A stretch of DNA of 11,429 bases from Caecitellus pseudoparvulus (taxonomy: Eukaryota > Protista > Bigyra: Bicosoecida). Every line of letters begins with the position of its first letter. Positions within the stretch are counted from its first letter, which is position 1. Under the pieces are notes generated by a model. It was not told the DNA's origin. It saw nothing but the letters and a program-made list of their open reading frames with translations, and ran no database searches. A program made the position numbers and the translations under genes. This document shows positions 1 to 11,344 of the stretch, one piece after another. The stretch lies in NCBI GenBank assembly GCA_965644315.1, contig CBFFRQ010000169.1:1-11429 (forward strand), in the 5' to 3' direction.

Positions 1-2069
1 AACTTAGCTGCTTCCTGCCGCACACTGTCTGGGATCCTGCGGTGCCCAGTCAGGCCCAGCAGCTCATGCACAACGTCTGTGTGGCCATTGGCGCATGCCA
101 CGCGGAAGGCGGCCTCAGGTCCACCCCATGCCTCAGCGTGCACATCCACCTCCCGCGCACCAGTCAAGCCCAGCAGCTCATGCACAACGTCTGTGTGGCC
201 ATTGGCGCATGCCACGCGGAAGGCGGCCTCAGGTTCACCGTATGCTGCCGCGTGCACATCCACTGCCTCATCCCCCGTCAATGCAAGCAGCTCACGCACT
301 CTCTCAAGTTTGCCTTCCTTGCACGCAACTAGAAAAGCAGCATTATTTACCTTGCTGAATCTAACTTGTTCAATGAATGGATCAGACTGTGCAGCTGGTG
401 CTGTGGCAGCTTCGGCTGCCTTCGCCTGAGCTGCTGCGTCAGCCGCCCATCTTCGGACAAGCACACCCCGCACAGCACTCTCTGCACCTTCCAAACAACC
501 CATCTGTCCCCCACTTTCTTCACACGCCATCGCATATGCACCCATGCAGCAACCGCTCCCTCCCCGCCCCAACACCTCCAACGCGCTCGACAGAGCATGC
601 TCACCACGCTCCCCACTCCCCACAAACAGCGACCCAACGCCCGATCCGCCTCTCAGCGCACCACCTCCCACATCAAACACCTCACGCAGCACACTTAACA
701 CACCCTCACCATCACCGCCGCCACCACCAGCCTGGCGTGTGCCCCACACACCGCCACAGGCACTCAACACCACCTCACACCCACCCCCATCCAATGCGCC
801 CACCAGATCACCCACACTGCCGCTCCCCACACCCACCACCACAAAGCTCCCCACACCCACGCCACTCAGACTCACTCCACACGCCTCCGCCACAGCACAC
901 ACACCCAGCACTCTCACAGCCACGCGCTGCTTCACATCCAGCCCAACATCGTCCCACGCTTCATCCTCCAGGAACACCCTCAGCGGCCACCCCGCCTCAC
1001 ACTGCACCTGCACTGTGACTCTGCTCCTCTCACCAACCGGCTCATCAGCTCGGCCACAAATGACTCCGTGCGCGAGTGCTGCTCTGCGTGGAGTCTGCGC
1101 CATCCGTGGAAGTCCTTGGGCGATGCGAGTCGCTTCGCCACGCTTCACAGCCCCAATACTAGTTGCAAGCGCTGTCGCACCCGCACCCACACTCCCTGCC
1201 CACTGTTCCACATCCACAGTTCCACCAATACCTTCATCCACGATCTCGCTCCGTCCACTGTACACACTCAAACCCTTGCCATTCAGGCAGCCCAAGCCGC
1301 CTGGCAAGTCCAAGCCACCCACAGCCTTCACCTTCCGACCGCTCATCACTGGCGCACACCCCAACAGCCCACGCAGCTCCTCCGCTGCACTCGCAGCACA
1401 CTCCAAGTGCTCCGCAGCACTTTCGCTCCTCAACTCGCCTGCCGCCTCGCCTCGCAGCCACTCAGCCTGCTGCCGCATGCCAGCCAGAGCCGCATCCGTC
1501 GCTGCCTTGCCACCAGCATCATGTGTGACGGGGCCACCCTGACCAGCCACACCTGCCTCCGCCACCTTGAAGCCTTGCCACCATCGCGTCAGGTCAGCCA
1601 GCGCACCCTCCACGTTCACACCGGCCCGCACACTGCCCCAAGCACCCGCAATGGAGCCCCACAGTGCGCCACCCTCCGGCACTGCATCGACACCTACACC
1701 GCTCGCCACCTGGTGCAGCACATCCACCGCGCAGAAGCACCGGAACGACAAGTACTGCAGCGCAGCACACACACCACCTCGCTCACGCTGCCCAGCCAAC
1801 AGCCCAGCCTGCCCCAACAGCGCACTCCCCGCATCACGCAGTGCAGCCTCCAGCTCCACCAGACTCATGGCCGAAGGGGCGTCAGCTGCAGCAGGCGCTT
1901 TGCCACGCCCAATGGCTGCCAGTCCTCGCAGTGCTGGGCCGTGGTCCATGACGCTGTCCGGCAAGCACTTCATCTTGCGCAAGCATGCCGCCACCACCTC
2001 AGCCTGCGTGCCATCGATGCCTGCAGTGGCTGCTGCACTACCCTTCATGGTTTGACCCACTGCTGCTGC
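1..2069 (-). CDS. Host gene, partial (3' end outside window): Ala/Gly-rich N-terminal region, degenerate kinase-like domain and ankyrin-type repeats
   Basis: One minus-strand frame is open from a TGA at 2090-2088 to the window edge. Acceptor-like CTGAC..CCACACCACAG| at 2070, in-frame ATG at 2048 (MKGSAAATAG...). The C-terminal part reads NNAAFLVACKEGKLERVRELLALTGDEAVDVHA / EAAFRVACANGHTDVVHELLGLTGAREVDVHA / EAAFRVACANGHTDVVHELLGLTG, the ankyrin pattern A-x-x-x-G-H-x-x-V-V-x-x-L-L. An upstream exon may end at the GTGAGT donor at 2336. Confidence 0.8.
46..234. repeat. Near-identical 114-bp-period internal duplication encoding two ankyrin-type repeats
   Basis: 46-120 matches 160-234 with one mismatch (CAGG vs CAAG). 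Offset is 114 nt = 38 codons. A third, diverged unit lies at ~250-345. Confidence 0.95.
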
Positions 2070-2471
2070 CTGTGGTGTGGGGGAGGGTCAGGGCGCTGTG
2101 TGCTGTGGTGTATGGGTGACATGCTCTGGCGCAAGTGCTGGCGAAAGCGGGGTGCCATGCCCACACCAACGCACCATGGCGATGGGTGGCAGGGGATCTG
2201 ATCGGGTGTAACAGTGCTGTATAGCTGGTTCCTGTAGTGCGAGCGCTGTGGGCAGGTGCTTTGGTGTGGCGTGAAGGCGATGTCGCACTTGACGTGCGAG
2301 GGTGCAACTTCCGCACTTGCACCAGTGCCCACTCACCTGCCGCGGCCAGGCATGGAGGCAGGGCACCAGTCACAAAGTTGTGCTTGTAATGGTACACACT
2401 CAAAGGTGTGTGATGATTTGCTGGACTGCGTTTTTCCCACTCCGGCTTCTTCATGGAGGCTCCATGAGTAA

Positions 2472-2526
2472 CCGTCATGAGATTTTCCAGGCCCCTCCGA
2501 ACCCGGCGGCGGGCTTGTTGCCGGGT
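2472..2526 (+). repeat. Left imperfect terminal inverted repeat
   Basis: CCGTCATGAGATTTTCCA...ACCCGGCGGC-GGGCTT-GTTGCCGGGT aligns with the reverse complement of 10021-10074 (CCGTCATCAAAATTTTTCCA...TCCTGGCAAC-CACGTC-GTTGGCGGGT). Confidence 0.65.
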
Positions 2527-2584
2527 TCCCAAATAAGGCCTGAGAGGTTGGCGGGTGTTTGGCGGGTTTACCCGCCAACGACGT
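2499..2584. repeat. Left subterminal cluster of the ACCCGCCAAC motif in both orientations
   Basis: Copies at 2501-2510 (+, 7/10), 2517-2526 (-, 9/10), 2547-2556 (-, 10/10), 2558-2567 (-, 9/10) and 2570-2579 (+, 10/10). Includes the palindrome TTGGCGGGT-TT-ACCCGCCAA at 2559-2578. Confidence 0.8.
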
Positions 2585-3076
2585 CGTGGAATGAATTGTT
2601 TGCGCGCCTGGTGTTTCCACCCCGGCACTGCACCTGGTACTGGCTTGTGCCACCCCTGTGCCACCCCTGCCTCTCCTCCTGTGTGTGAGACGTCTCAGGT
2701 TTCGGTCGTCGCTGTCGCCTGCACGGGAGCGGAGCGGGGGTGCATGTGAGGGAGGCTCTCCTTACCCACCCATGCATCACGGAAGGGGGTGCTCTTCACC
2801 AACACACCCGCAGTGTCTGATCTCGATCAAGGCATCGTATTAGTCTTGGGTTTACCTTTGCTCTTTACGGGGCAGCAGCTGCCAGCGGCGTTCGGGGGAG
2901 TGACACGGCGGGTGCAGGAGACGCCACGGCAACGCGGGAACCTCCAATGCAGCAACGCACCGCTCAGACTACCACGTGAGAGAGATCGGCATTCATGATG
3001 ACTTCATAGTTCCAAAAAGCAAGATCTGGCGGCAGGGGGCGTGGCGGGGAGCGTGTCACTACGGTGAGGCTGGGCG

Positions 3077-5945
3077 TTAACGCAGCCTTCCAACGCCAAC
3101 ACTCACATTCCGCAGTGGGGCCCCCTGCATGTGTCGAGGGTCGAGTCTGGGGGCCGAAGCAAATATTGTGCCAGGATATTGTTCAACTACATGAGTTTCT
3201 GCACAGGGGAGGGCGGCGTATAGAGTGGAGCAAAGCTTGTGGTTCAGGTCAAGCGCGCCGGAAACGCCAGTGCTGACAGGTGTGCGCAGCTGGCCTCCCG
3301 GCAGCCTCACGTCAACTGTGGGACTCGTGAATGCAAAACGCTTACAAGTATCTCGGCGGTGGCAAGTGGAGTGAATGCCAGTTGTGCCCACACTGCGCAA
3401 GTGCACCCCCCACCTGGGGGAGGGGGGGGTGTGTGGCTCTGCTGCCAAGATCGAGGGTCTTCCCATCAGGTCCTGTGGGCTTTTGGAGGCGCTCTAGGGC
3501 CTATGCAACCTGACACTGCCTTGAGCAAAGACCTAGCGAAGGGCTCGGGTGCATTTTGGCCCACAGGGACGCCCGCCCCTCCCCGATCAAGGGGGAGCCT
3601 GCAGGTATGCCCCAGGCTGCCAATGGCAACCTATGTATTCAACAAAAGCGCCTTATATGCGTTGAGTCGGCGCTTGGTGTCCGGTTCCAAGTCTTTCGTG
3701 GGGTCGCTGAGTTGGCGCTTTGTGCCCTTTCCCTGGCCTTTCAGTGTTTCAGCGACCCGTGCTTGTACCTTTTGCGCCAAGACCTTTGGGTCTTCCATCA
3801 TCGAATCTTGAAAGGCCTTGGTGATATACCCCCAGGTTATGGCGCATCCATCCTCACCTCGTAAGAACGTCCAAATAGGCCCGAACACGGTGGCAGCAAT
3901 GTACAGTTGCGAGTGACTGAGTGTGTGCCACTGGGCGTCGATCGGAAGTTGCGGGACGTCGCGAGCGAGGCTATACGCTTGGTCTCGGATGACGCCAAGC
4001 ATCACCCTGGTGAGATACAGCATTGCTGCAAGGGGGTGAGATGTCTGCCCATCGCCCTCCAGACCTCCGCCTCCAGGTTGCTCGGCACCTCGGCTGCAGA
4101 GGGCCTGAACCTCGGATGCTGCCAGCAGGCTCACATAGTCGAAGGGGGTGTCGGCCGTCACAAATGCGCTGACTGCTTCAAAACGTGCTCGTTGGCGGCG
4201 ACTCACCTCTTCCATGGCAAGGGCGGCGCCGTTCGCGCCTTCCCATGAGAGGAAGTCCATGTTCCTCCTGGTGGGCGGTTCGTCGACGAACTGGCGGTCT
4301 GAGATGTTGATGGAGTCGACGTGGGGAGGACAGACAGCGTACCTCTTGCAGCGAAGGGGCTCAGCTTCTGCCTTGGGACACAGAGTCTTCAGCGCCTTGG
4401 CAACACGCTCCTTTTGTGCAGCCTGACCTGGCTGCAGGATCCGCTGTACCGCACTTCGCAGCTTCTTGCATGCGTCCCGGACAACCCCCAAGGTCACCCC
4501 ACCCAGCAGACGTTTGGTGTCTACCCAAGGATGGGGGGCGCCAGCTCCTCCAGCAGACACTCTCTCCTTGAGAAGCTCACAAAAGCCCTCAAGTCGTGCG
4601 AGGGGGAAAGATAGAGCTGGAGTTGTGAGTCCAGCGACACGACGAAGTTCATCGTGTACTGCCAGGGCAGAGCCCAGCAGCCCTCCGGAGACGGCCAGCG
4701 CGGCGTCTGTGCACATGAGTGTGAGAAGGCTCCCATATTTGTCTTCCTTCCCTTTCCGCTGGGTGGGGAATTTTTTCAGCTTGGTTGTCAAACGAGGCTT
4801 CCCAATGGCGTCCATGTGGTTGGCCATGAACAACTCGCTGCTGTTGGCGCTGTGGTCCTTTCGCTTCGCAGGGGTCACTTGGTCGGCGACCACCCCCTGC
4901 ACCTTGTCAAGTCTACCTGCCAAGTATACCACCTGGTACTCCAGGGAGACCGTCCGAGCAAACAACAGCTGGAGAAGTCCTCGATTGACCACCACGGATG
5001 CTTGGGTCGCCCTCTCACGAAGGCCCGGATCCCGCACGTGGAAGGCCTCCACGTCCAGCATCCGTGGCACCTCGCTGGTCTGGGCAACATGCATAGCCAA
5101 CGCGTTTCCGTGGGACACTGCGAACGAGGACGAAATCCGACTTAGGACAAAGGGCTATGGAACCCAGCTCGTGCTGTGTGAGCGGCCTCGCCACTGTCAC
5201 CGGCTGCAGCGAGTTCCGTACGCACCCTCCGCACTCGATTGCCTTGAACTGCTCGTCATCTCACCGTGCATCTTGGCGAGGTGCTCTTGAAGTGCTATCC
5301 CTGTGCCTCATAGTGACAATGCGTTGTAGTGAAAGCGTGATATGATGCGGTGCTGTACAGTGCACAGGCGTGACGTGCCGTTGGCGCCAGTCAGGTCCTC
5401 CTGCCAGGTTTCGAACGAGGGGTGTGGCAAGGTTTTGTCAGCCATTTTGGCACAGGTGACCTGTGTCGCGTGAGTTGCCCTCAGTATCCGATCCAGGGAC
5501 TGTACCTCCTTCCTGATTGCCAGTTTGGCTTCGGGGGGTGAAAGACCGCAATCCTCAAATGTGGTTTGTTGGGCCATCTTTGCAGGGAGGGAGAAGGGCT
5601 CGAGCGGTATGGTGGCATACAAGGCGCTGAAGATGGTTGTGAGAAGTTCGATGGCGTCTGGGAGATGACCTGGCGCGCCAAGTGGCGTGTGCGTCGTGCT
5701 TCGTGCTCAACGGCCACCCCCCCTCCTCCGTCAGCATCACGGCGCCGCGCAGCCTGTACCATGACGGCCGACACTGCGCGCAGAGCCTGATCAGTCACCT
5801 CAACCTGCTATAGTTCGACCATATCCCCTCCCACGAAGATCACCCTGCCTGCTGTCCGCGATGCTGGTGCAGCCCCGGAAGGTTCTTGTTCACACACCAG
5901 TACGGAAACTGCACCACCACGCCTCAGCACCTGCACTCCCCCCAT
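3077..5945 (-). pseudogene. Disrupted large gene with a C-terminal tyrosine recombinase (phage integrase-like) catalytic domain; the intact part is the 495-aa ORF 5118..3631
   Basis: Motifs in order: TFLRGEDGCAITWGYI (3870-3823, cf. box I TGLRxxELxxLxWxDI); GKGTKR (3732-3715, cf. XerC/D GKGxKxR); LEPDTKRRLNAY; after a frame change RLPLAAWGIPAGSPLI; VHLRSVGTT (R at 3397-3395); LDLNHKLCSTLY (H 3241-3239, Y 3220-3218). Upstream pieces 5945-5707 and 5700-5265 read as protein. A possible in-frame 147-nt intron spans 5264-5118 (GTGAGA...CCTAAG...TTCGCAG). Lesions: TAG 5810, TGA 5310, TAG 3503, and frame breaks near 5700, 3640 and 3410. Start and end are uncertain. Confidence 0.6.
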
Positions 5946-6119
5946 CCTGCAGTTCCAGCGACAGGTGCGTCTGGGGGCCGCATTGTGTGCATTCTTCCTG
6001 TGTCCCTGCTCTCGGTTGCGAACTTAATGCATTCGCTGTGGGCATGCGGTAAGCACGCACTGTGGCGCTGGGCATTTGAATCACTCAGCTCCACTCATTG
6101 GTCACAGACGCAGTCAAGC

Positions 6120-9100
6120 ATGTCCAATCCAGCAAGTTTTGAATGTCCCGTTTGTAAACGCCCTTTCACAACTCAGCGGGGCCTTACTCGGCACTACAGG
6201 ACTAGGTGCAAGGATGTGGCACGTGAGCGACGGCTGGCAGCGGCCAGTCAACGGCGGGCGAAGCTTGCGCGACTTGCCGAAGATTCCGAACCCACCCTCC
6301 CGGAAGAGCTTGAAAAGACTTTCGTTGGCGCCCATGCCTCCCTCGAACAGTCCACAGCAGGGGTGGCCCCGGCGGAGCATTCGCCCCCATCCACGCCTGA
6401 CGATGAGGCCTTTGTGCCAGACTCTGACAGCGACAGCGATGCAGAGACGGGGTTCGAGACAGCCTTGTGGGAGAGGGCCTTTCCTGGACCAGGGGCCGAA
6501 GGCATTCAGCTCCAGCCAACTGGCAGCACGGCACCCGAATCCCGGGAGGTTGACGCCGAAGCCGCGTGCCAGGCGATCCAGGCTCGCATGCGGCTTGACG
6601 CGAAGGCGATGGAACACCTGCGGAGGGAAAACTACATGCTGAAAGCGATCTTGACGACTGACGCTAGTTCGGCATCCGTGTTGAATCTTTTGACTGGCCT
6701 GTGGAAGCAGTGCATGTCGGACACGGAAGGATGCACATGCCAGGCACGGATCCGTGGAAGGAAGCCGGTTCAGCCGCACGAGGCCATGGAGCGTTTGGCT
6801 CACAAGTTCCAAGGAGACCCCAGCGTCTGCATGCCGGGCGTGGTGCACGCCAAGCTGCCCCCGAGGCGCACGACCGGCGAGGCAACGCCCGCCACAGCTG
6901 GCCGATCCACGGTGTCAAACTACGAGATTGGCTTGTCCACGCGCTGGCTCGGGTGCCCGTCGAGTGCTTGCCAGCCCGGCCGGCCACGAGAGGTGTCCCA
7001 GACCCCATGCACACGTCGGGGATTGACACCCCCATGACTCGCACGCTGGCCGAGAGTGTCTGCGCTGCCTTCCGCGAAAGTGACGCCATTGCACTCGAAG
7101 CATTCCGAAGGCACCGGCGATCTTTGTGCGACACGGATACCCCCCCCTTGGCTGGGCCGTTCTGGAGAGGTGGCCGCTTGCAGGCGCACACGATGGCGGG
7201 CGCACAGGAGCCCCAGGATGGAACCGTATCCTGTTTCAGTGAGAGCCCCTGTGCCCAAGCAGCCTCTCGAACAGCCCTCGAGCACCACGCGCTGCCGTTT
7301 GTCATCAACGTCTTCATGGACGAGGCTCACCCCTTCCGCCAACCGAAGACGGCCATCACACCCCTGAGCGTCCGGCCCATGCAACTAAGTCCCCGTGAAG
7401 CTCGAAGCCTGGGTGCCGCGGGAGTTCTCGCCTTCATGCCTCTAAAGGACATGGACTTTAAGGGGACTGCGGAAGCGGTGAAGCGTGCCAAGTACAGAGT
7501 TCACCAGGCACAGCTCTCCGCTGTGCTGCTGGAGCCTCTTGCAGATATCCACGCCCAGGGGGGGCTCTGGATCCCTGTGAATGCTGACCAAGTGGCCGGG
7601 CTTCAAACCCTGGGCGTTGACGTGATAGAGGCGCGGCTTGGGGACTCTACACTGTCATTCACTGCCCGCGTGTGGCCGCTCATCGGCGCCATCTGCGCAG
7701 ACACCGCCGAGAGGTGGCAGCTGCTGAACTCTGTCCATGGGAGGCCTCCGCGGTGCTCTTGCGCGCTGGCATGGCGGAGTGGGGGCCAGCAAGCACGGGC
7801 AAACCCTGAACTCCGTCCCACCGCCGAGACCGTAGAAGCTCTCAAGACCTGCAGGCGGCACTCGGCAACCTTCCATGCCGACGCGCTGCGCAACGTGGAG
7901 TCAGCCGACCAAGCTGTGAGGGCGCAGGCCCAGGCAGACCTGGCCACGATCCGGTGGAAGAGCGAAGAAGACATTTGCGCCATTGAGCGCCACGCGTCCC
8001 TGTTCGTGGGGGGCAATGGCTACGACGCCTGCCCTGCAGACAGGCTGCACGTGCTGGGGTCAGGGGTGGTGGGGGACCGGACATGGGCCGCGCTGGAGCA
8101 GGCCATACTGGTGCCCGGCACCCTCACCCAGGACACCCGAAAGACAACTTTCATGAAACGCATGCAGCAGCCATACCCGCGCCGCATCGACGGTGTGCAA
8201 GTGGTCGGGGCGGGGAAGGACACGGCGGTGAAGCTATCGGCCGGCAACGCCGTCACTGCCGAGGACAAGCTGGGGCTCACTCGGTGGCAGACCCTTATGG
8301 TGGGCACGGACGACGCCGTCGTGGGGCCGCCCAAGGTCCGCCAACTGCTGAACGCACTGCATGGGGCCGTGGGCGTGGTCCTGCGCTTCACGTACGGCAG
8401 GGCAGTGGCTGGGCGGGGCGACGCGTGCCGTCTGGCCCAGTGGATGGCCCGTGTGGCCACCGTGTTCCAGCTGTTCAGCAACGAGCTGCAGACCCACGGC
8501 CGGGAGGCTCTGCCCCTTACCTACCCCAAGCTTCACATCGCGCAGCAGATAGCGCTGGACATGCATTGGTACGGAAGCCTGGAGACCGTGGACACGGACA
8601 ACGGCGAGACCATGCACACTCGAATCAACCGTGTGCTACGTACAGTGCACCGCGGCAAGGTCGGCATCTTGCGCAAGCTTGCAGTGAGGGTGTGCCTCGT
8701 GCAGGCCATGAGCTGTATACCGTACTCGCTACCTCCGGGGTACACCCCCTCCCCCAGGAGTTGGCACAACCTATTGCATTCTCGCTCCCTGGACGCCGGC
8801 GCCTGTGCCGGGGCTGCTGCTGACCCAGGCGCTGAGGTCCCACTGAACTTGGTGGGCACGGCCATGCGGCCGATCGTGACGCGATTCACCAGCGCTACCA
8901 AGCCGCTGACCTTCCCAGAGTCCTTTCTCGCGGGCGCAAGCGCCTTGGCGTGGCTTAGAGAGCGGCAGGTGTCGACAATGTTGCCCGGGGGCTTGCACGA
9001 GGTGCAGCTAAAGCCCGACGACGTTGTGGATGGGAACGACGCGGGCCACCGCCCCCCCCTCACGTTGTGTACAAAAGTGAGGCTACAGTATCCCTCTGGT

Positions 9101-9499
9101 AACACCAACTGGCTGTCGTTGCCGGGGCTGGCTGACGTCATGTGCATGGTTGTGTGGGAGGGCAAGCGGTACATGGAGCGGACACTGATGGAGGTGGCCG
9201 TGGCCCTGGCGCCAGTGCGGGTCAACGCACGCAGCTATCTGCCTGATGAGACCCTCCTCTTGTGTCGTCAACTGAAAGTGGGCGCCCCGGAGGTGCAGGG
9301 GTGGGGAAGGGTGGACCACGGGCCAGAGGCGGAGGCGGAGCCGTGGGTGCTGGTGACGGGGGGAGGGGTGGCTGGCCCGGCAGTCGTGCACGAAGCGCCC
9401 TGGTTTGTGAAGACTGAGGAGGAGAAAGCTTCCTACCGCTTCCACTGGGCGCTGCAGGGCCCCGTTGGCAAGCAGCGCAGCGCCACCGCGGACGCGTGA
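6120..9499 (+). CDS. Plavaka-like (CMC/EnSpm-related) DDE transposase with N-terminal C2HC zinc finger; split over two frames
   Basis: ATG 6120, zinc finger CPVCx12HYRTRC (6144-6209), acidic linker. Second frame: VINVFMDEAH...ITPLSVRPMQLSPREAR...VLAFMP (D 7319); RVHQAQLSAVLLEPL; RVWPLIGAICADTAE (D 7700); PADRLHVLGSGV (D 8039); YPKLH...WYGSLETVDTDNGETMH (E 8606). These match the Plavaka motif series (SD..., R-V-x-P-x-L-x-x-x-x-AD-x-x-E, D-x-LH, PKxH...FG...TE-x-x-E-x-x-H). Stop TGA 9497-9499. Frame change lies within 6701-7037, most simply at the C5 run 6858-6862. Confidence 0.85.
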
Positions 9500-9509
9500 G
9501 GCGGCACCT

Positions 9510-10046
9510 CGATTTTGCCAAAGACAGCCTGAGACGGCCGGTCAGGGGGGGTGCCGCATCGGCCAAATCTTTCTCACAGGGCGCTCAAAATGCACGACAG
9601 AGGCAGGAAATCGCCTTCACGCGCGCGTGTGCGCCGGCGTCAGGGACTTGGCAAAGGCGGTTGGCGGGTCGGCTGTCTCAGCGGAACTTGGAGCCCAAAA
9701 AGGCCCACTTTAGAGGTGCCTCACGCGCCATCAAGAGCGAAGCAGCGCGCGCCAATGCAACCATCGGCATGTGCACATCGAACTTAGTACCCTCTGCGAT
9801 TTATGCGAAAATGGCCAGATTTTCGACCCTCGTTGGGGGGTGAGGGCGTGCCCCAGGCTGCCTCCACTACCACGCCATACCAGCCCCTTCCCATTGCGCG
9901 GCCCGCCGCGGCGCCCCCGGCACGAAACGCGTTTGACACAATGTTAACACAAAATAATGCCATTCCCCGCCATTCCCGACCTCTGAAACGCCCTGGGGGC
10001 GAATCTTGCCAGAGAGCCTGACCCGCCAACGACGTGGTTGCCAGGA
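9510..10046. repeat. Right subterminal region with ACCCGCCAAC and related motifs
   Basis: GTTGGCGGGT 9660-9669, ACCCGCCAAC 10021-10030, GTTGCCAGGA 10037-10046. Related strings TTGCCAAAGACAGCCTGA (~9515) and TTGCCAGAGAGCCTGA (~10006). Confidence 0.55.
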
Positions 10047-10074
10047 AAATCCAGTGGAAAAATTTTGATGACGG
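10021..10074 (-). repeat. Right imperfect terminal inverted repeat
   Basis: Reverse complement begins CCGTCAT and then ATTTTTCCA, like the left end, with the motif pair at the same offset. Followed by AA. Confidence 0.65.
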
Positions 10075-10252
10075 AAACCACTCTTCATCACAGTTCACAA
10101 TAATCAAAACACTCAAGCCAACGCACATTTGTTCAAACACGAACCACCAATTCACTCCAACCCGTCACCGTTCTTGGTGAGCGATTTCACCACTTTCCAT
10201 CGTTGCGCGGAGTTGCCGGGGCAGTGGACGCCGCAGTCTGCCCAGCACGGAC

Positions 10253-11344
10253 ATGGCTTCAGTTTGGCTGGCACGTTCCCTCACGTGAGTGCCTTTCCTT
10301 GACTGCACCCACCACACCGCAGCACCGAGGCGCGAATCTCCTCCATGTTTCCAGCTTGGTGGGCTTGTTGTATGCCGTGTACCGCAGCTTCAAGGTGCTC
10401 AAGCAGCCACCTGGGCCAGGCCACGATGCCGAGACCAATCGCATGCTCATGTTGTGGTGAGTCGGGGCTTCGGCCGGCAGAACGAGGACCAGCTTTGCAG
10501 CCACTGCGCCCTGTCTCATATTCACACAGGGTGACCCTTGCCTTCAACTCCATGTTCGAGCAGTACGGCGAGTTTGCCATCAGTTGGTGCGTGCTGCTGC
10601 CGTTCCCGAGCAATTTCCGCAACGCAACGTGGACACATTCCCCGCCCTCCTGCAGGGCGCCGTTTTACTATGAGCTCAAGTGCGGCGTTCTAGTGTGGTT
10701 GTTGCTTCCACAAAGCAGTGTGAGTGGCTTTACCGCGCCTTAGGCCTCCGCGGCGCTTGCTCTGCCCGGTTGTCACAAGCTCTTGCCTGGCGCCATCACA
10801 GGGGCCGGGGTGGGCGTTCAACACGCTGGTGCACCCTCTGGTGCAGCACTTGCGCGTGCGACTGCACCGCGACGTGAAGCCAGTTCTCGCCCGTGTCTCT
10901 GCAGATGGTCTAGTGGGGTCGCAGAGCCAGCTGCTGCAGAGCACCATGTCTGGCTTGGGCGTGCAGCAGCTAAAACACGTGGAAGAGGTGCTGGCAGCCC
11001 AGGTGCAGGCGCTGAAGGCAGAGCGGGCACGGCGTGCGCAGGGTGGTGCTGTGCCTGGCGCTGCCCTGCTGGCTGAGGCTACTCCGCCGGGGGACGCCCT
11101 GCCGCCGCCCAGACCTGCCGTGCGATCTCGCAGTGCCTCTCTGAGCGAAGCCACGCCTCCTGCTCCAGGAAAGGCTGGGGAGGACACGACTGTGCCTCCA
11201 CCGCCATTGCCACAACAGGGGGGCGAGAGCTTTTTCGACGCTCTGTCCACGGCAGGCAGTCGCCTCGCCTCTGACCTGGGTCTGGCAAGGCCCAGCACCG
11301 CTGTGCCGCAGCAAGGCGAGGCGGAGAGCAAAAAGGACAGGTGA
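10253..11344 (+). CDS. HVA22/TB2-DP1 (REEP/Yop1) family membrane protein; exons 10253-10284, 10355-10456, 10530-10586, 10656-10719, 10802-11344
   Basis: Four GT-AG introns (70, 73, 69, 82 nt; donors GTGAGT x3 and GTGCGT) splice in frame to MASVWLARSLTLVGLLYAVYRSFKVLK...RMLMLWVTLAFNSMFEQYGEFAISWAPFYYELKCGVLVWLLLPQSSGPGWAFNTLVHPL, the family pattern (Y-x-S-x-K, L-x-x-W-V, W-x-PFYYE-x-K, WL-x-LP, G-x-x-x-x-x-x-x-x-x-x-P). The 3' end may continue through a further intron (AG|GTGAAT at 11341 to ATGTAG at 11416). Confidence 0.9.

Follow-up and report, generated by a model that had tools for sequence, protein, structure and literature searches.

The window analysed here, an 11,429-nucleotide stretch of a GC-rich contig (about 60%) from the bicosoecid Caecitellus pseudoparvulus (GCA_965644315.1, contig CBFFRQ010000169.1), holds between positions 2472 and 10074 what is best explained as a cut-and-paste DNA transposon that was active recently, belongs to the CMCT clade, with Plavaka as its nearest described relative, and resides in a GC-rich protist. 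The element unites a DDE transposase with a second gene (hereafter gene 2), which belongs to the element and has no ends of its own. An initial annotation of this DNA had proposed that the second gene encodes a tyrosine recombinase (YR), which would resolve cointegrates or excise the element as a circle. That proposal is not supported: in four lineages, the gene 2 protein ends before the lysine hairpin, the H-x-x-R, the H/W and the Tyr that complete the active site of a YR.

The element and its copies

Relatives of the element were drawn from metagenome assemblies and from an assembly labelled Symbiodinium sp. KB8. The view that positions 2472 and 10074 bound a single element with matching terminal inverted repeats (TIRs) is upheld by copies L006 and L007/L008 and by an empty site, L184. 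These copies share 99.8% identity with the window, and their similarity to it ends exactly at 2472. Beyond that point they continue into unrelated flanks (a leucine-rich-repeat gene and a kinase gene) and the left end is, therefore, fixed. L184, which comes from another sample, is the L007 flank without the element, that is, an empty-site allele; together with the differing flanks, it implies that the element is mobile and polymorphic. The near identity of the copies, combined with this polymorphism between strains, makes the family look recently active. The right end is known from a single junction, in this copy only.

The same two bases, AA, adjoin the element on both sides, a match for which the chance of 2-bp identity is 6.5%. 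The length of the target-site duplication (TSD) is not secure, because the bases that follow the L007 junction are GG (L007:5890-5891) whereas the empty allele reads GA (L184:825-826). Contig L185 begins (L185:1) exactly after these GG/GA bases, as if both alleles coexist in the sample, and the L007 insertion may have a changed TSD or terminus.

The inverted match between the element ends is loose and spans approximately 100 bp, and the CCGTCAT 7-mer alone is a weak signal (three matches in the window versus 1.1 expected). The 8-mer CCCGCCAA occurs five times in the window versus 0.68 expected (0/200 shuffles), with four of the five occurrences lying within 110 bp of the ends, and these subterminal repeats are found in both orientations. 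We consider it very probable that the element is a real, recently mobile TIR transposon with a DDE mechanism. Its features are collected in Table 1.

Table 1. Features of the element, in order of position within the window
Feature	Position	Strand	Remarks
Left copy of the probable 2-bp TSD (AA)	2470..2471	none	Both junctions at one locus only
Whole element	2472-10074		7.6 kb; CCGTCAT / ATGACGG ends; AA on both sides
Left TIR: CCGTCAT core and GATTTTCC box; subterminal CCCGCCAA at 2548, 2559 and 2571	2472..2580	+	Exact boundary in L006, L007 and L008
Post-stop region of gene 2 (3' untranslated region and subterminal DNA)	2581..3630	-	Contains, in another frame, the H-L-R, H and Y of the initial annotation
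Gene 2, last and main exon, ~495 codons, stop 3633-3631	3631..5117	-	LRGE (Arg 3861) and W-G close a helical domain; a K-R-rich tail follows
Gene 2 intron, 147 nt, GTGAGA...CGCAG, phase 1	5118..5264	-	Predicted from DNA
Gene 2, short middle exon, provisional; donor of the first intron uncertain	5265..5300	-	No significant peptide match to relatives
Gene 2, first coding exon, ATG 5577	5350..5577	-	3' boundary approximate (5380-5350); MAQQ start also in L186
Spacer between the two start codons, 542 bp; presumed bidirectional promoter and 5' untranslated regions	5578..6119	none	Presumed function
CMCT/Plavaka-like DDE transposase, intronless, ~1,126 aa in intact copies	6120..9499	+	1-nt frameshift near 6857 in the window copy
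Transposase motifs	C2H2 finger 6138-6203; D 7319; D 7700; C-x-C 7754/7760; DxxH 8039/8048; PKLH 8525; E 8606
Right subterminal region and right TIR: CCCGCCAA at 9661 and 10022; ATGACGG end (10068-10074)	9500..10074	+	L001 homology reaches 9964
Right copy of the probable 2-bp TSD (AA)	10075..10076	none

The transposase

The transposase of the window copy is frameshifted and was searched piece by piece. A relative of 1,159 aa with a full-length frame, P0001, aligns to 6126-6860 and, after a change of frame, to 6872-9496, with 80% identity over the catalytic part. Copies L006-L009 have one extra C near 6857; these sister copies keep an intact transposase 5' frame, and L006 is stop-free from the ATG at 6120 to the end of its contig. 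The frameshift is specific to the window copy. The start at 6701 given in the initial annotation is an artefact of the C missing near 6857, the true start being 6120. The window is shorter in homopolymers than its four sister copies (by four C at 5716 and by one C at 6857), possibly through sequencing errors.

With the start corrected, the description of the protein as a Plavaka-like DDE transposase is borne out by its motifs: D, D, DxxH, PKLH and E are kept by each relative whose sequence extends over them (all in P0001, the later ones in L012). The N-terminal C2H2 finger is recognized with E=3e-5. The support that had been sought in PF18759 (Plavaka) proved partial. It is the only transposase-family match and lies at the second Asp (E=0.0027 for the ORF from 6701 to 9499, E=0.00048 for the core), but the scores of 17.4 and 19.9 bits for the window and 15.9 bits for P0001 are all under the 26.3-bit threshold for membership. 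A Pfam profile search with the window transposase gave no match to Transposase_21 (PF02992). Assignment to the CMCT clade was made by motif, and we call the protein Plavaka-like, rather than a member of Plavaka, because its C-x-C pair and the termini of the element differ from those described.

Identity between the window (6120-9499) and L001 is uneven, at 36% over the N-terminal 250 aa and 80% over the rest. Nucleotide identity peaks at 97% (8278-8427) and 91% (8728-8877), possibly reflecting recombination between families, and the breaks in the assembled copies fall within or close to the 97% stretch. The L001 family may possess a different right end with a CCC-type terminus (CCCGTG, minus strand, L001:4243-4253); L001 and L002 share one flank. 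In L012, a degenerate internal transposase fragment (L012:289-1294, corresponding to window 7741-8715 at 77%) is embedded in unrelated DNA, and a 94-bp imperfect palindrome is present at L012:2289-2382.

The second gene

The head-to-head arrangement of the two genes, recognized in the initial annotation, is found in the window and in the relative L005, where both are joined. The MAQQ start at 5577 is shared with L186 and, therefore, the gene starts (ATG 5577 and ATG 6120) are 542 bp apart, not approximately 140-175 bp as first thought. A gene 2 start near 5946-5984 was rejected: the ATGs there open unsupported short frames, and it is the MAQQ start that is conserved.

Gene 2 is spliced and was searched exon by exon. 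Its intron at 5118..5264 is matched in position and phase by a 122-nt intron of L003, L011 and L186, and the first exon scores 71 against L011, compared with a maximum of 41 for shuffles. Across the last exon, relatives P0003-P0005 and P0008 are 36-54% identical; an unfiltered search of 1.84 billion proteins yielded three genuine relatives (36-54% identity) and one near-identical copy. Identity by codon position is 0.52/0.59/0.39 versus L011 and 0.61/0.70/0.46 versus L004 and, because the third position is the least conserved in every pair, gene 2 is under purifying selection in four lineages. It diverges much faster than the transposase (36% identity versus 80% for the transposase core).

In L005, a reversed transposase 3' end is fused to the middle of a gene 2 relative with head-to-head polarity, a layout expected if a head-to-head element had lost 4.3 kb internally. 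The transposase part of L005 is 81% identical to the window at the nucleotide level and 90% identical to L001. In sample ERZ27290035, a transposase of the L001 type is present on one contig and a gene 2 of the L011 type on another. No internal repeat family bounds gene 2, and the same arrangement recurs in L005-L009; the gene is part of the element and not a nested Crypton or DIRS insertion. Library searches of the window gave no match to a GCR1_C or reverse transcriptase partner domain.

The predicted protein, of approximately 570 aa, is mostly helical, with a likely nuclear signal in its K-R-rich (KRPR) tail. Sequence searches of all pieces against Pfam, PHROGs, NCBIfam and PDB returned nothing for gene 2; the same libraries missed a DIRS-like YR control in L004. 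Scans of JGI metagenomes, IMG/VR and GTDB returned no relatives, an absence that means little because the known relatives were missed by the same word-based search.

Two further observations concern the region past the gene. Approximately 260 bp beyond the gene 2 stop, L011 becomes AT-rich (L011:2290-2455), which points either to a misassembly or to a foreign element joined at this place. In the window, a 190-codon open reading frame (ORF; 3239-3811, plus strand) runs antisense to the last part of gene 2, and every metagenome copy has it annotated as a gene; it has no Pfam match and no counterpart in the relatives, and Rfam also gave nothing.

Comparison of gene 2 with tyrosine recombinases

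The initial annotation had assigned a series of R-K-R-H-Y motifs to gene 2. The first Arg (3861, in LRGE) does lie in the gene and is conserved, but none of the other residues could be retained. LRGE followed by W-G is invariant among the gene 2 relatives, with the Trp at Arg+9. A Trp at this distance is likewise present in many integrases. The proposed Lys aligns with the KRPR tail, which resembles a nuclear localization signal (NLS). The H-L-R (3403-3397), H (3241) and Y (3220) occupy a different frame beyond the stop and are absent from the relatives. A pattern as loose as this one fits four of the 53 long stop-free frames in the window.

Ten reference YRs provide a measure of the length required. 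In these proteins the catalytic Lys is located, in a beta-hairpin, 23-29 residues past the Arg; from the same Arg there are 102-170 residues to the second Arg and 130-202 to the Tyr. Gene 2 ends 76 residues after the LRGE Arg in the window and 90-116 residues after it in the relatives, by way of a low-complexity linker and the KRPR tail. There is no conserved Lys 23-29 residues after the gene 2 Arg, a stretch predicted, at low confidence, to be helix, and neither an H-x-x-R nor a shared Tyr occurs in the gene 2 ORF of the window or of any relative.

It had been supposed that the motifs belong to a protein at 3900..3200 whose frame has been shifted and needs repair. The stop at 3631 is common to five near-identical copies (L006-L010), with zero differences in 3900-3297, and L006-L009 are also identical to the window down to 3200; as the five copies share this stop without an insertion or deletion, there is no frameshift to repair. 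The post-stop DNA showed no similarity above shuffles, as DNA or as protein, to the matching regions of L004, L005 and L011. A downstream exon common to L005 and L011 was rejected, since the two resemble each other to roughly the same degree in each of the six frames, and so at the DNA level only. An intron running past the gene 2 stop was also discarded for want of a host-type donor. The introns of the flanking HVA22 gene are short and of the GTGAGT/GTGCGT type; no donor of host type (GTGAG, GTGCG, GTAAG) is present from 3857 to the stop except at 3857 itself, where its use would cut LRGE, and the 3857 donor is missing in the relatives.

For the profile comparison, Cre, lambda Int and eight YRs from plasmids were aligned, with 20 shuffles as the null. 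The family alignment of the gene 2 C-terminus scored 13.2, which is the null level (10-12 of 20 shuffles as high), and the window piece 3900-3634 aligned at Box I with a marginal score of 16.5 (2 of 20 shuffles as high). Piece 3490-3080 gave no match to the YR profile, whereas two DIRS-like YR fragments in L004, serving as controls, beat all shuffles at the correct motifs. Two additional candidates were rejected: residues 124-190, which align to YRs in a Box-II-like manner (probability 0.25%) but have an unconserved Arg, lack a Tyr and lie upstream of Box I, and a set of YR-like words past the stop in L004, with null scores. The DIRS/Ngaro-like fragments themselves (L004:1-675; Box I, G-L-R-S-G, G-G-W and Tyr, with a stop) are directly upstream of a 5'-truncated gene 2 copy. 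They probably represent a separate retroelement in a decayed copy, and this is the sole place where a real YR touches the gene 2 family. Ngaro elements have been reported from Cafeteria (PMC8547959).

AlphaFold2 models of gene 2 were poor (predicted local distance difference test scores of 39 and 50, with 5-6 sequences) and place a helix after LRGE where YRs have strands. The integrase fold that the initial annotation anticipated was not recovered, in that Foldseek returned no match for these low-confidence models. Negatives from folds and libraries are weak evidence, because the libraries missed the YR control and the folds are of low confidence. The case against a YR is built on the length of the protein, on the stop that the copies have in common and on the absence of conservation past it and, judged from the sequence, we are confident that gene 2 does not encode an active one.

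Neighbouring genes

Upstream of a spliced host gene of the TB2/DP1/HVA22 family (10200-11344, plus strand; introns of 70-85 nt), the element lies at a distance of at most approximately 200 bp. On its other side, an ORF of at least 695 codons (3-2087, minus strand) runs off the window; it has a low-complexity middle and C-terminal ankyrin repeats, the latter encoded by a 114-bp tandem at 45-299.

Discussion

The DDE transposase would cut at the CCGTCAT ends, and reinsertion would proceed with a 2-bp stagger, as in CMCT elements. The gene 2 protein may then act as a non-catalytic nuclear accessory factor, by analogy with TnpA of En/Spm, that could bind the CCCGCCAA subterminal repeats or the transposase, help to pair the ends and regulate the shared promoter. 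We lean, by this analogy, towards gene 2 as a TnpA-like end-binding or regulatory partner. In En/Spm, TnpA evolves fast, binds to subterminal repeats and is required alongside the transposase, and the animal TRC elements of this group have CCC ends with a 2-bp TSD (PMC2613891, PMC1636069). The window element similarly combines a conserved transposase with a fast-evolving second protein, carries subterminal repeats in two orientations and has ends that start with C, accompanied by a probable 2-bp TSD. It differs in lacking a Transposase_21 or TnpA Pfam match and in having a CCG core rather than CACTA/CAC or CCC.

Several considerations weigh against a TnpA-like partner. TnpA is an alternative splice product of the transposase's own transcript, whereas gene 2 is a separate, divergent gene on the opposite strand with its own start. 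No library searched detected a DNA-binding domain in gene 2, and the proposed role thus rests on analogy. The splicing of gene 2 was read from DNA alone, which leaves room for unusual splicing past the stop; in CryptonF, Box I takes the form LRGE (PMC3212892, supplement 4); and the negatives that bear on a recombinase are weak ones, given the missed DIRS-like control and the low confidence of both folds.

Alternatively, though this is rather unlikely, gene 2 could be cargo that acts on host silencing or chromatin, as is thought for TET/JBP in fungal Plavaka, or a gene captured from a host or a virus. Cargo of this kind is known from CMCT elements (PMC12730594), and a gene with its own divergent promoter, introns and an NLS-like tail, long retained under selection, would fit this description; however, library searches of gene 2 revealed no dioxygenase, methylase or other enzyme signature, and none of the relatives found has flanks that mark a host or viral gene.

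We regard as improbable a third interpretation, in which a CryptonF-like YR derivative was captured by a Plavaka-like transposon, lost its C-terminal catalytic half early and was selected as an end-binding partner. What was kept as a DNA-binding module would be the helical region at the N-terminus together with the helix of Box I, comparable to the catalytically dead DUF3504 and Ndc10/Gcr1 derivatives. Because this interpretation concerns origin, it is compatible with an accessory role. The invariant LRGE and Trp are consistent with it, as are the Box I spelling LLRGE of CryptonF YRs, including MarCry1_FO, and the marginal alignment of piece 3900-3634 to Box I. The family alignment at the null level is not, and no link emerged from Pfam, PDB or Foldseek searches. 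Furthermore, Cryptons continue after LRGE with L-x-D-L, strands and G-K-T-N, whereas gene 2 continues with an amphipathic W-G-F-x-T-R-A-F helix.

That gene 2 is an active YR, with C-terminal motifs supplied by unusual splicing or by repair of a frameshift and with a function in resolving dimers or cointegrates or in circularizing the element, is highly implausible: the Box-I-like Arg, the downstream H-L-R, H and Y in the window, a pyrimidine-rich acceptor-like site at 3414, a donor-like GTAAGC over the L005 stop and the existence of DDE-YR elements elsewhere (PMC3464196, PMC3212892, PMC11244446) are set against a stop identical in five copies (four of which keep the transposase 5' frame open at the place of the window's frameshift), the lack of a usable host-type donor, unconserved post-stop DNA with no clear coding signature between L005 and L011, the failure of 3490-3080 to match a profile that recovers the L004 control, and the fact that H-L-R is not H-x-x-R.

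Leaving gene 2 as a probable accessory partner of the transposase, the element as a whole can be compared with described systems. The termini of PlavakaA are TGT..ACA and those of PlavakaB CATCA..TGATG, while CMCT elements have a TSD of 2-3 bp and a C(2)C pair of Cys residues (Kojima 2025, PMC12730594). The window element resembles Plavaka, and PlavakaB in particular, in its weak PF18759 match at the second Asp, its DxxH and PKLH, its probable 2-bp TSD, its short TIRs with a CCGTCA core reminiscent of CATCA, and its room for a second gene. Unlike Plavaka, it falls below the Pfam cut-off, its termini (CCGTCA..TGACGG) start with CC and not with CA or TG, it has C-x-C instead of C(2)C, its second gene is not TET/JBP, and its host is a protist rather than a fungus.

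The bacterial Tn4430, with a transposase of the Tn3 type, is also an element in which a DDE transposase is joined by a YR. Among eukaryotes, the two enzymes coexist in Euplotes Tec and Paramecium Sardine/Thon (PMC3464196) and in Fusarium MarCry-1_FO, a Mariner transposase joined to a Crypton YR (PMC3212892). These too are TIR elements with a DDE transposase and a further gene, and the MarCry YR shares the LRGE spelling. However, their transposases are of the Tc1/mariner type (TA TSD) and their YRs possess the downstream catalytic motifs (seen for MarCry), whereas the window element has a long-spacer CMCT-type transposase, AA flanks and, of the YR motifs, only the Arg. The 'Plavaka giant repeats' of Amoebidium (PMC11244446) similarly place a protist Plavaka-type transposase beside other genes. 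They form tandem clusters of up to 50 kb with recognizable YR genes, unlike the compact 7.6-kb TIR element described here, whose second gene is without the YR catalytic half. The Amoebidium repeats, in which YR genes are flanked by a Plavaka transposase, also supply a precedent for the pairing of Plavaka with a YR; the initial annotation had known of no described family of this kind, without being able to confirm novelty.

Conclusions

The union of a DDE transposase with a YR, the headline claim for this DNA, fails here, and precedents for it exist in any case. Judged against published descriptions, what the window contains appears to be new: a lineage of Plavaka-like elements in which the ends read CCGTCA and an orphan gene stands head-to-head with the transposase. 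Were gene 2 to derive from a truncated YR, it would represent a recombinase domesticated by another transposon and not by the host. These results extend the Plavaka-like CMCT transposons to a GC-rich protist, in which they are accompanied by a divergently transcribed partner gene of no known family. The family, apparently active until recently, looks testable, and it offers a small, defined system in which to study the role of the second proteins of CMCT transposons.

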